Assembly: GCA_025558095.1 (NCBI GenBank)
Contig: JAIVFI010000007.1
Location: 496,001-560,000, forward strand
Source: Hyaloraphidium curvatum SAG 235-1
Lineage: Eukaryota; Fungi; Monoblepharomycota
Length of the DNA stretch: 64,000 nucleotides
Direction: 5' to 3'
Part shown: positions 40,337 through 46,009 of the stretch, piece by piece
Layout: each line of letters begins with the position of its first letter
Position numbering within the stretch: the first letter of the stretch is position 1
Notes under the pieces: generated by a model
The model's database searches: none
What the model was told of the DNA's origin: nothing
The model's input: only the letters and a program-made list of their open reading frames with translations
Translations under genes and position numbers: made by a program

Positions 40337-43300
40337 TCACCTGCCCTGCTGAACGAGCCGCCCCAATGCCGCGAGCAGATCCTGCTGCCGCGCGGGCTTG
40401 GGAACAAAGTCGTTCATGCCGCTTTCCTGAGCACGCACCCGATCCCCGGCAAAGGCGTTGCCTGACAGCGCGCAGATGTAGATCGCATCGCCGGCGAGCT
40501 CGCGGATGCGCCTCGTCGCTTCGAACCCGTCCATCTCGGGCATCTGGAGGTCCATGAAGATGACCTCGTACTGCCTCCCGTCGTCCGCGGCACTCTGCAC
40601 CCTTTCGATCGCCTGGAATCCGTCGTTGGCAAAATCGTACTTCTGGTGCAAGCGCTGGAGCAGTTTGCCCGTCACTCTTTGGTTGATCAGGTTGTCCTCC
40701 ACCACGAGAACCCTGAAGACGGGCAGCTTGACGGGCCCGAGTTTCGTGTCCACAAAGATCTCGGCCGCGGCCGCAGGCCGTTTTGCGGGTTTCGAGGGGG
40801 ATGGCGTTTGACGGTCGGGTCCGGGCGCCGGCGACTCGAGCACCGTCGTCGCAGACAGGTTATGCGCCAGGGAAAAGTAGTCGCGCGGCTCCACGGCAGA
40901 CGCCCTCGGCGACGAGAGAGCTTCTAGTCCTGCCTGAGGAGTCCCAATGCCCGAAGGAGTTGTCAGGATGGTTGGCAGCGAGCTGTCCGAGGAGTCACCG
41001 ATCTCTTCCAACGACACGTCCGCCACGCGGGTCAGGCCACTCGTATCGGTAGTCGATGTTCGGAGGGGAGTCGCAGGCGACTTGACTGCTTCGACTTGGG
41101 CAGTGCCACCACCGGCATCCGTTGCCTCGAAAAAGACAGGCTTTGCACGCAGAACGTCGCGGACGTCCGCGACAGACAATGTGTCGTTCGGCAGCTCGTT
41201 GATGAAGCGCACGACCGCCGACATCTTGGCCGGTCGCAGGAGAACGGTCACCTCGTGCGCCTTGGTCAGGCGAAGCGACTTCCTGAACGTTTTGTGCGAC
41301 CCCGGTCCGCACAGGAGCAAACATCGTTTGGATAGTCCGCTCCTCAGAATGCACTTGAGAGCGCTGACCTCGTGCATGCATGTCCTGAAGTCCATCACGA
41401 GGGCCGAGACCGACTTGTCGGTCAGAAGGAAATCTCCCAGACTAGAGCATTCGATGATTGCAGCCGAATCCACCCCAAGCGCCTGCAACAGGTATCGCAG
41501 CGCGTCTCTGTTCAGGGGCCTATTGTCCACGATGGCGAACGAAATCGAGGACGGCGATCTCGAAAGCTCCAAAGGCTCCTGAACGGAGTCGGCCAGTTTT
41601 GCCTTGCCGGGAGAAAGGCGGTCGAGAAAGACCCGAAAGCAGAATGTTGCGCCCCGGTTCTCGAGCCGCGACAGGACCTCAAGGTCCTCTTCATGCATGC
41701 CCGCGCCATCCGAAAGCCACACGTCGCCACCCATTAGTGTCGTAAGCTTCTTTACGATGTTGAGGCCGAGCCCGGTGCCGCCGAAACGTCTCGTAATGCT
41801 CTCGTCCAGCTGTGCAAACTGCTTGAACAGCTTCTCCTTGTGCTCGTGCGAGACGCCAACGCCCGTGTCGCGGACAGCGCCCTCCACCAAGATACGCGTA
41901 GGGTCGTCTGCCGGGACACTCGTTCGCAGGATCAACACGACGTCGCCTTCCAGAGGCGTGAATTTGATCGCATTGTTGAGGAGCTGTGAATGACAATTAA
42001 ACGAAATTCACGGCAAGTAAAGGACCGGAGACTCACGTTGACCAAGATCTGCCGAAACCGCGTGACATCTCCGGCCGCCACTCGCGTCTCCGGCTCCTCG
42101 AACAGATACGCTGCGAATCTAAGTCAACAAAGGGAGACCAGGCCGAGCGAGAACCCCACCATTGATCTGCGGGCCGTCCTTGGAAGCCGCCGTGGACACG
42201 ATCTCGATTGCCAGATCCATGGCTTCCCGGATCGCAAATGGCCGCTTCTCCAACGCCAGCGAGCTCGACTCGTACTTGGAGAAATCCAGAATGTTCGACA
42301 CGATCTGCAACAGAAGGTCGCCGCTTTGCTTGATGATTGTGACAAGCTCCTGCGCCTCGGCGAACTCTGCGTCATCTTCGTTCTCCGCATTGGCAAAGAA
42401 GCCATCGAGCAGGATCCCGGAAAGAGCGGTGACGGCATACAGCGGTGCTTGCAGCAACCCGATCAGACGACCTTTGAAGTTTTGCTCTGCAAATGCACTT
42501 ACTTCTCAGCTCGTGAGAAACGATCGTGAGGAAGTTGCGATGCTCCGCCGCCACCTCGATCTCCTTCCGCGCCGCCAACAGCAATTCGTTTTGTTGCTTC
42601 AGATTTTCCATCTAAAGAAGCATGTCAAACGTCGTCCAGCATTGTCAACCAACCTGACGTACCCGAAGCCGATCGACTTCGATTGCGTTGGCTGCAACGG
42701 AAGGTAAGAACAATGATGAACGCAATTCGAGCTCGTCACCTTGATTCAGGGCGATACCGATTTGCTCCGCAGTGTCGGTGACCAGGCTCGCGGCAAACTC
42801 CACCCTCTCGGGCAGATTGTCCTTGTCCGGTCCCGGATCCTGAATGTGCAGGACAAGAAGGCCCCATTCCGACGCATCCATACGATCGTTCGAGGTCTTC
42901 GATGTGCTCTCCCCCACTGTCGCGTTCTGATCCGCACCAGGCGTACCTGCCGGAGTCGTTCCCGGTGACCCAGAGGTCGCGAACCCAGCATCGGAGGCCG
43001 TCGGAAGGGGGAAGCGAATCATGATGACAGCCCCGATATCATCCATGGGCCCGAGGCGATGTCGGACCCGCTGGTGCGGATGTTCGTGTCCGATCTCCAC
43101 AGCAGTGAAGATCTCGCGCATGGCCTCCGAATCGCGATCCGTGAATAAGGTGATGCATTTCGACGTCTCCAAGGCGACGGCGATTGGAGCGACCCGCGTG
43201 TCCAGATCGTGGAAAGGCAGCTTCTCCACGCCATTCGAATACTCAGCGAAGAGAGACATTTTTGTTTCCTGGAAGCTCGGAAGATAGATGAGGCAACGCC

Positions 43301-44309
43301 CTCCGTACCGGCCCTCCGGCTGGGCCATCCATGGAGAATCGCCGTCCGGTCCATACTGGTCCGCGTCCAAGTACTCTTCCAGCAAGCGGGCACTCGCATC
43401 CAACGGGTTTTCGGCAGCGTCTGGAGAGCCGGGCGCAGCGAATACAGAACCGTCCTCGCCCAGCTCCGAAGGAGGTTTGGAAAACAGGTCTCGCTTCAAG
43501 AGAGCCCTTCCAATCTCCCTCGCAGAGATCCGCAGAATCGCGGCCCGCGCGAGCGTTCTGCGAATCTTGATGATGATGTGGCGGAGCAGTACGAGAGAAT
43601 CGCTCTGGTACCGAAGCGATCGTTCCGACAAATGCTTCTTTGCCAGTTCGTTCTCCAACCTGTCGTGCGAGCACTGTGAGGAAGAGATGCGACTGCAACG
43701 GATCATGACCTACGCCTGAATGAATCTGGGAATCATGACGGCCTTTGGGGCCAGGCGAATAAGCACGTACGCGGTGTAAAGGCTCACAATGCTCGTCAAG
43801 ATCTTCGAGACGTTGAGGAGAACGAACGTCCAGTGATAGAACGGTACGAAGGCGCCGATGAAATGGGTCGTGCCGCAGAGGAGGATGAACTGAACGGTGG
43901 CAGATCAGAGGCGCGACGGTAGGTAACGCGTGTAGAAGGAACTCACGGCGACGAAGAGATGCACCACAGACTCCACCGGCAGGTGGGTCTGCGCTTGCTT
44001 CATGAACCAGAACATGCTCAGCGGGATGCTGAAGTAGGCCAGGGCGATGCCAAAGTCTGTAGTGAAGGAGCAAGGTTGAAGCGTAGTCGGCGCGGACGGA
44101 AGACCACGGCTCTCACCACTGACGGCGCTCACGACCTTCCCCGCACCGCTCATGGGCAGGCACGGCTGTGATGTGCCACCATAGAATGATGAGTCCCGTA
44201 CGGGTGGAGGGGCCGGGGCCTCGTTTCGGGCGACAATGGCAGCGCCCCCCACGGAGGTTGCACCAGCGACGCACAGAGCCGCAAGCGCCAGATGGCCCCA
44301 GCGCTTCAT
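40337..44309 (-). CDS. Ethylene-receptor-like hybrid histidine kinase (signal segment, ETR1-type 3-TM ethylene-binding domain, GAF, HisKA, HATPase, pseudo-receiver, receiver)
   Basis: Spliced: SDFGIALAYFSIPL..FVA|FILLCGTTHFI..SKILTSIVS; GAF IRRTLARAAIL..TAEQIGIALNQ; SHELR|TPL; LLNNAIKFT; DTGVG; GGTGLGL; VEDNLINQ..IFMDLQMPEMDG..VPKP. Confidence 0.92.
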
Positions 44310-44512
44310 TGCCAGCGACTCAGAGGCTCGATACTCCTCGGAAACCACCGGTTTCCGCTGGAAGGGAATGGTCGGCGGGTGATAGCTTCCGTATGTTTAC
44401 GAGAGGCTTTTGGCGTCGGCGGGCCCGACCGACCGATGACATGACATCAACCTGCGAAATACAACTCGTTCAGAATTGCCGGCAGAAGATTGATGCGGAA
44501 AACGTACAACAT

Positions 44513-45287
44513 TCAATCTGCGGAACCGTTCTCCCCTACTTCGCCGCCTGACGCGTCATTCGGTTCCGGTTCCTGCTTAACAGCTGAGGAGGCAGGTCTG
44601 CGGGAGCGACCCTTGTTCGAGCGATCTCCCGGCCCCGATTGCTTCAAATTGTCAAGAAAGGTCTCCATAACGGCTTCATAGTCATCGAAGCCGAGCTGTC
44701 CCATAGCCCATAACACGTCCTCGCCCGTCAAGGCCTTTCGGTCTTCCGACAAACAGTGCTCCGCGGCTGGAAAGAGACATCGATCAGACCGTCACCATCG
44801 CACAATCTCAAAGCAGGTCACCTTCGCTCGTAATGAAGCTGATGAACTCGCTCGCACACTCCAAGATGCTGTCCTTGGCGTCCTTGGCGATCTTTGCGGT
44901 TTCCGGCAGCACCGACTTGATGATCCTGGACACGTTCGCGTCCGGGAGGAATCGATCGTGCTCCTTGACATCCTTTCCGTCGTCCTCCTCGCTAGCCACA
45001 GCCGACGCGCTCCCGGAACGATCTCTCCGCTGCCGCCTCGGCGGTCCCGAGGAAGCAGACGCGTCGCTCGCGTCGTAATCGTCGTCCGCTCCATCGTCCT
45101 CGCTTTTTGGTGCCCACTCCTCGTCATCCGCGGCATCGGGAGCCAGTTTGGAGACGGAAACGGGGGTCGCAGTGGGGATCGTCACCTTCCCCTTGCGCGC
45201 TGCGGGACGCGTCCGCGGGCTCCCATCGGTCTCATCGACATCCTTAGAAGGTTCAGGTTCTTTTCCGCCGCGTTTCCGACCCGACAT
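44513..45287 (-). CDS. Histone-fold protein, NF-YB/Hap3-like
   Basis: [46 protein letters not shown]|[30 protein letters not shown]. Confidence 0.85.
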
Positions 45288-46009
45288 GGTCGACCGGAGG
45301 ATGGGGACGCGATCACCCCCCCTCTCACCCCAACAATTAATCAATCAATCAGAGGAAGCAACAATCGCCATCCGACGCCGTTCATAATCCGGTGGGTAGG
45401 CGTGCGGTGAATGCAACCGCTCTCGGAATGAGGATAAAACTGGTAGTCTATCGCGGGCTCGGTCCGCGAGAGCCGGGAGAGCGTCGGCATCCTGCTCCTG
45501 GTGCCTGCTCCCTCTCCGGTCGAGCGGCTTCGGAAAGCAGCCGGCGGGCACAAAGTGCCGGCTCTCGGCGATGAAAGAACCAAGGCGAAGCGGACCGATG
45601 GCGACCCAGACGACGTGTTCTTCTCGTTCCTCTCTGGCTTACCTCCACCTCCATTTCCTCCCAGATTACCTACCAGGCGGAACTCTAAGTACCTGGTAGA
45701 ACTCTCAAGACAAACTGTGGAGAGACAATCCGTCATGGGAACTTCTGCCGGTGAGGATCGGAACGACCGTTGTCTGCCACCTTGCTCTGGGGTGGTGGGG
45801 GAACTCGGGCGAAGACGACAACACTCGACTCGACGCTCCAAAGCAATGGGTGTCAAACATCTCTAAGAAGTACTGAGCCTCGGGTTGCTCTAGCTGGATG
45901 GTTGGATGTGGCGGAGGTAGATTGGGCGCTGACTAGCTCATCCCGGGACAGGCACGAACAAAGATCAAGATTCCATCGGCATGGCGAGCATGTATTTCCG
46001 TTCCAGAAT

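Follow-up and report, generated by a model that had tools for sequence, protein, structure and literature searches.

The minus strand of the window, the 64,000-nt stretch of Hyaloraphidium curvatum DNA analyzed here, carries a gene for an ETR1-like hybrid histidine kinase (Table 1). Exon-by-exon translation gives a nine-exon reading frame, divided by eight introns and free of internal stops, in which HisKA, HATPase_c and receiver domains are all located on one polypeptide with an ethylene-binding domain. The initial annotation of this DNA described positions 43660-44309, which make up the first sixth of the gene at 44309-40337. H. curvatum, a little-studied relative of the Monoblepharidomycetes without flagella, has an unclear lifestyle (PMC6899921); literature searches returned no link between Hyaloraphidium and ethylene receptors and no ethylene response of Hyaloraphidium.

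Table 1. Features of the ETR1-like gene (window positions; aa, residues of the spliced protein)
Feature	Position	Strand	Evidence
Whole CDS, ETR1-like hybrid histidine kinase (1181 aa; 3546 nt in 9 exons)	40337..44309	-	RNA joints, phases, no stops
Exon 1: hydrophobic N-terminus resembling a signal peptide (aa ~1-25), short spacer, Cys50 (44162-44160), beginning of TM helix 1	44117..44309	-	Hydropathy, homolog comparison
Intron 1, 60 nt, in frame, stop-free, splits Asp65 codon	44057..44116	-	RNA joint, translation
Exon 2: TM1 (D65, Y72, I75, P76, S78), loop, beginning of TM2 (F99)	43947..44056	-	Pfam ETR1_N 29.6 bits, alignment
Intron 2, 57 nt, in-frame TGA inside	43890..43946	-	RNA joint, translation
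Exon 3: TM2 with I103, C106 (43877-43875), H110 (43865-43863); TM3 with K130, T133, S137	43714..43889	-	Pfam ETR1_N 41.7 bits, alignment
Intron 3, 54 nt	43660..43713	-	RNA joint, translation
Exon 4: helical linker and predicted GAF domain carrying two inserts of low confidence (aa 161-466)	42740..43659	-	AlphaFold fold match; no Pfam match
Exon 5: 29-nt micro-exon joining sensor and kinase halves in frame	42663..42691	-	Joints 42691/42740 and 42611/42663
Exons 6-7 (intron 42502-42448): HisKA, phospho-His509 at 42515-42513	42160..42611	-	Pfam HisKA on exon 7
Exon 8 and first part of exon 9 (intron 42036-41984): HATPase_c	41627..42110	-	Pfam HATPase_c E 9e-18; N, G1, F, G2 boxes intact
Degenerate receiver-like domain (a lead only), aa ~780-900, limits approximate	41183..41545	-	ESM Atlas feature matches; no Pfam match
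Canonical receiver domain, Asp1111 (40552-40550), Lys1162	40364..40711	-	Pfam Response_reg E 4e-23

Splicing and copy number of the ETR-type gene

Public sequencing run X1, which comes from one study, is taken as RNA by a guessed label and may be the annotation's own library, yielded a single 4658-nt contig across the gene. Its joints at 44056/44117, 43889/43947 and 43657/43712 (cut +2) correspond to introns 1-3, all bounded by GT..AG, and five further introns are spliced out of the same contig (42739-42692, 42662-42612, 42502-42448, 42159-42111 and 42036-41984). Because ten GT-AG introns are skipped precisely, the contig represents a spliced transcript. We conclude that the ETR-type gene of H. 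curvatum is real, intact, expressed and spliced.

The three introns named in the initial annotation are all missing from the contig, and the spliced peptide given there was reproduced by translating the exons in turn. The limits proposed for introns 1 and 2 (44116-44057 and 43946-43890) were exact; the third intron, placed at about 43713-43661, exists but its end was one base off (43713-43660 by the RNA joint). The same joint ruled out an alternative acceptor for intron 3 at 43674. The CxxxH exon is absent from the list of open reading frames, as had been noticed, owing to an in-frame TGA within intron 2.

Intron 1 divides the codon of Asp65, the equivalent of ETR1 D25, after its first base (G/AC). 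Its retention would add 20 residues right before TM1 with the Asp still encoded; it is spliced out in the run X1 contig, and contigs drop rare forms.

Searches of the 31.9-Mb assembly with the Pfam ETR1_N profile (PF25487) and with a 68-sequence profile each located one binding-domain locus. No paralog was seen with either profile, a search that divergent, intron-chopped copies could escape, and the gene is single-copy in H. curvatum.

Domains and conserved residues of the predicted receptor

Searches used the individual exons of the spliced model; the intronless ortholog P0122 served as its stand-in for fold prediction and the database protein P0001 as its stand-in in trees. Wang and co-workers reportedly found in 2006 that seven ETR1 residues, D25, Y32, I35, P36, I62, C65 and H69, are required for ethylene binding. 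Equivalents of all of these, and of K91, T94 and S98, are present in the H. curvatum protein, in agreement with the initial annotation. The mapping was made by eye against the Arabidopsis ETR1 sequence given in the PMC5285503 supplement and reads, from ETR1 to H. curvatum, D25=D65, Y32=Y72, I35=I75, P36=P76, E38=S78, F58=F99, F61=F102, I62=I103, C65=C106, H69=H110, K91=K130, T94=T133 and S98=S137.

That these residues belong to an intact ETR1-type binding domain, as originally proposed, is borne out by PF25487, which matches exon 2 (29.6 bits, E = 8e-7) and exon 3 (41.7 bits, E = 1.5e-10) above its cut-off of 27. Because each exon scores separately and the two matches follow on directly along the profile (positions 12-45 and 46-95), the match is not due to chance; intronless orthologs score 83-101 bits. 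D25, Y32, I35, F58, F61, G66, T68 and H69 are invariant in 68 of 68 homologs, and C65 is found in 67. The replacement of E38 by Ser, to which the initial annotation had drawn attention, is genuine (Ser78) but carries no special meaning: Glu occurs in only 4 of the 68 homologs, and since position 38 varies outside plants the substitution is little informative.

Three TM helices are predicted in the window protein by hydropathy, and the AlphaFold model of P0122, the intronless ortholog from environmental contig L003, consists of helices at 2-32, 40-63 and 69-100 plus a linker helix (pLDDT 95.7). PDB sequence searches, and fold searches using the P0122 model as query, gave no significant match to a solved ethylene-binding-domain structure. 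The signal-peptide-like hydrophobic N-terminus has similar counterparts in three orthologs (P0121, P0122 and L005). Cys50 lies at -15 from the conserved Asp, where 57 of the 68 homologs have a Cys, and is missing from P0122; dimerization via a single upstream Cys has been suggested for cyanobacterial receptors (PMC6682694). In a model of ETR1, Cys and His hold Cu(I); the Asp of helix 1 positions the His and forms a bridge to the Lys of helix 3 that couples ethylene binding to output (PMC10266040). All four of these residues are present in the H. curvatum protein.

Exon 4 produced no Pfam match, and an hhalign profile-profile match with plant GAF profiles was not significant. Its AlphaFold model (pLDDT 62, core 70-87), however, matches GAF domains at Z 14-15 with an rmsd of ~3 Å over 150-170 residues, and GAF-containing structures are found throughout the top ranks of the structure search. 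By predicted fold, a GAF domain thus follows the binding domain in exon 4; the model is of medium quality, and its input alignment included plant GAFs and may therefore have biased it. The Pfam HisKA match on exon 7 (25 bits) falls just below the cut-off because the H-box sits in exon 6. Kinase motifs H509, N, G1, F and G2 are intact, as are Asp1111 and Lys1162 of the receiver. The stretch between kinase and canonical receiver has no Pfam match, and its ESM Atlas feature matches to receiver-like clusters (0.94 and 0.90) make a degenerate receiver-like domain at this place a lead only.

Orthologs and relation to known receptors

Three environmental contigs (L003, L004 and L005) contain orthologous kinase halves followed by ZPR1, and the gene order of L003 is that of the window: ATG14, eRF3, NF-YB, ETR, ZPR1, RAI1, NOT3. 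In L003 and L005 the binding domain has the same key residues and is encoded in one exon, the window's three binding-domain introns being absent; at the sequence level these single-exon domains independently confirm the spliced reading. L003, L004, L005 and P0121 are environmental contigs of Hyaloraphidium relatives with kept ETR-ZPR1(-RAI1) synteny. An in-frame TAA at L003:9385-9387, within the HisKA exon of that ortholog (single contig, SRR26194948), reflects either an assembly error or loss of the kinase from this receptor.

Full-length ETR-type hybrid kinases were found in Synchytrium endobioticum (TPX42470.1, P0125), S. microbalum (P0281) and Amoeboaphelidium protococcarum (KAI3633784.1, P0129). 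All three are annotated as hypothetical proteins, from species outside the 2017 survey (PMC5285503). In a kinase-core tree among bacterial and plant kinases, the window protein groups with the Synchytrium and Amoeboaphelidium ETRs (support 100/99); in a tree with 11 other Hyaloraphidium kinase cores added, the same clade is recovered at 100/100 with the 11 outside. Both groupings refer to trees that leave out the reference sequences RiHHK6, GpHHK2, CaHHK1/2, RaHHK2 and SPPG_07928. A match to a repeat protein (P0123) was spurious and was rejected. As judged from these sequence comparisons, the gene is an ortholog of the ETR homologs in other zoosporic fungi and aphelids, and we regard membership of the H. 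curvatum protein in the family as practically certain. The fungal-clade trees therefore argue for an old, vertically kept fungal ETR member and against contamination or recent transfer.

ETR homologs with all key residues, some with an extra N-terminal helix, were described from early-diverging fungi (Rhizophagus, Gonapodya, Catenaria, Allomyces, Spizellomyces, Rozella, Conidiobolus and Basidiobolus) by Herivaux et al. in 2017 (PMC5285503). Kabbara et al. refer to them as HHK group XVIII-A and add Capsaspora, Acanthamoeba and a diatom (PMC6324907), and a 2023 preprint adds Ancylistes and Zoopagomycotina and reports that kinase parts were lost in the Entomophthoromycotina homologs (10.1101/2023.12.22.573025). 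PMC11819568 credits Monges et al. 2023 with saturable ethylene binding in Rhizophagus irregularis, and gives Synechocystis, Azospirillum and, reportedly, Rhizophagus as the ethylene binders among tested seven-residue homologs. Because fungal ETR homologs have been known since 2017 (PMC5285503), the H. curvatum gene is a further member of a described family. The initial annotation noted reports of ETR-like genes in early-diverging fungi but overrated the surprise, given a described group and the binding reported for R. irregularis. New here are the species, which was outside the species sets of PMC5285503 and PMC6324907, the full-length gene model in corrected form, and a sub-lineage of orthologs whose GAF carries inserts.

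Like the group XVIII-A fungal ETRs, the H. curvatum protein combines a three-helix domain and all key residues with GAF, HisKA, HATPase_c and receiver domains, and its extra N-terminal hydrophobic segment is as in subfamily-2-like members of PMC5285503. It differs from that group in a GAF region of ~300 aa with inserts that escapes Pfam, and from RiHHK6 and GpHHK2 in its short lumenal N-terminus; those two keep Gln or Glu at 38. P0125 and P0129 have the same domain order by Pfam and 46-49% identity in exon 3, whereas P0125, P0281 and P0129 have kept Glu38 and have a shorter GAF region. With Arabidopsis ETR1 (At1g66340) and subfamily-2 receptors the protein shares D25, Y32, I35, P36, I62, C65, H69, K91, T94, S98 and the EBD-GAF-kinase-receiver order. 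Unlike plant receptors, it pairs the signal-peptide-like extension with an intact kinase, has one Cys at -15 rather than C4/C6 and Ser for E38, and has the putative extra pseudo-receiver. Synechocystis SynEtr1 (slr1212) and Azospirillum AzoEtr1 are likewise non-plant proteins with the seven residues, and ethylene binding has been demonstrated for those two; the single upstream Cys is a feature shared with cyanobacterial receptors (PMC6682694). Bacterial ETR kinases fall outside the fungal ETR clade, and the GAF of SynEtr1 is a photoreceptor, whereas the H. curvatum GAF gave no evidence of photoreception.

A non-flagellated aquatic fungus thus joins the ETR carriers, a loose fit with the 2017 idea of plant sensing on land (PMC5285503). 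The significance is modest, and the gene's presence would not surprise a specialist; a single-copy receptor with an intact kinase, in a sequenced strain with one HPt, nevertheless offers a tidy test case for ethylene in zoosporic-lineage fungi.

Proposed signaling mechanism and alternative readings

The genome contains two P1B Cu-ATPase loci above cut-off and one HPt on contig C22 at 402932-403243, which is YPD1-like with a conserved His motif. On contig C44 an HSF domain lies ~0.8 kb before a receiver, a Skn7-like arrangement. Of the plant pathway, the CTR1 N-domain, EIN3 and RTE1 had no match in the genome, a weak negative from an exon-wise search in which the positive controls were also silent. 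The two-component set is large for a 32-Mb fungus, with 41 kinase-core and 35 receiver matches alongside the single HPt.

Because the key residues and the expected genome partners are present, we favor, with a probability of about 0.65, a Cu(I)-ethylene sensor, close to the reading of the initial annotation, that would feed an HPt/response-regulator relay through His509 and Asp1111. The exon structure, splicing, domain order, residue conservation and orthology are established above; from the biology of ETR1 and SynEtr1 we infer the mechanism, including the binding, localization, dimerization, sign and targets of the H. curvatum receptor, as follows. The signal peptide would send the receptor into the ER, where the three TM helices would dimerize, possibly through Cys50, and a P1B Cu-ATPase would load Cu(I) onto Cys106/His110. 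Asp65 would orient His110 and bridge to Lys130 on helix 3; ethylene on Cu(I) would alter the Asp65-Lys130 bridge, and the change would travel through the linker to the GAF domain and the kinase. Autophosphorylation of His509 and transfer to Asp1111 would then change, most likely falling as in plant ETR1, although this direction is a guess. The phosphoryl group would next reach the one YPD1-like HPt and then response regulators, for instance the Skn7-like HSF-receiver protein, an output route other than CTR1/EIN2/EIN3. Ethylene is probably the physiological ligand and, given ethylene, output by phosphorelay is very likely.

The same copper site might instead respond to another input, such as a different small alkene or gas, or copper or redox status, in which case ethylene binding would be incidental or would not occur. 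Such a role would suit the unclear lifestyle of Hyaloraphidium (PMC6899921), the pocket-adjacent changes (e.g., F27 to Gly and E38 to Ser) and a domain that is widespread in bacteria with many outputs. We nevertheless consider it unlikely, in that the changed columns are variable within the family (68 homologs) and the cited tested homologs, all with the seven residues, bind ethylene. It is also rather doubtful that the sub-lineage formed by the window, L003, L005 and P0121, marked by a short lumenal arm and a GAF with inserts, senses gas through copper but responds to an input other than land-plant ethylene (e.g., algal alkenes or another gas) or integrates a second input at the GAF. If true, this tuning of the sub-lineage elsewhere would point to an ancestral, plant-independent receptor role in aquatic fungi.

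A receptor that binds ethylene but signals mainly without a phosphorelay, through protein contacts that its enlarged GAF or its pseudo-receiver would make, appears distinctly unlikely. The H, N, G1, F and G2 boxes and the receiver Asp/Lys are intact, as are those boxes that were read in L005, an HPt is present in the genome, and CTR1-N and EIN3 were not matched, the last being a weak negative. Plant receptors do act in this manner through CTR1, however, and the kinase parts lost in Entomophthoromycotina homologs (10.1101/2023.12.22.573025), the TAA in the L003 HisKA exon and the large GAF inserts all lean toward such an output.

The public gene model bears on whether the two halves of the favored ethylene sensor belong together. 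KAI9028627.1 (DFJ74DRAFT_496422) of H. curvatum, the single GenBank protein found for the locus, shows 100% identity to the last exon. This 705-aa protein lacks the binding domain and GAF because it starts at Met477 (42611) and covers residues 477-1181 only; proteome surveys may miss the receptor because this model hides its sensor half. If the model were right, the kinase would be separate and the sensor half separate or non-functional. The run X1 contig also spans the upstream NF-YB gene, and de Bruijn contigs can merge overlapping transcripts. A split gene is nonetheless very improbable: both introns flanking the 29-nt micro-exon are spliced with the frame kept, L003 and L005 have kept the same sequence at the junction, and in Synchytrium and Amoeboaphelidium each full-length ortholog is one protein. 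An origin by contamination or by recent transfer from cyanobacteria or plants can be dismissed, for although database matches of the domain are mostly cyanobacterial, the gene has eight spliceosomal introns, a GC content resembling that of the window, fungal neighbors with synteny kept in L003 and a place in the fungal clade, synteny and tree together ruling out recent transfer.

The upstream NF-YB-like gene (45287-44513, PF00808) and the ETR gene are joined in the run X1 contig, which is unbroken across both (window 44310-45391), either through overlapping UTRs or by read-through. The 203-nt spacer between them holds a GT-AG intron (44507-44452) and two upstream ATGs (44447 and 44442); a fusion protein was ruled out because the NF-YB stop (44515-44513) precedes this intron. 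A loose end of the contig maps to 45665 and defines a plus-strand GT..AG intron of 273 nt (45392-45664), indicating that a spliced antisense RNA overlaps the 5' end of NF-YB. This RNA is probably non-coding: no ATG-led ORF crosses the joint, and it is not conserved in L003 or L005. NF-YB is the upstream neighbor in L003 as well, and in L005 an F-box gene lies at that position.
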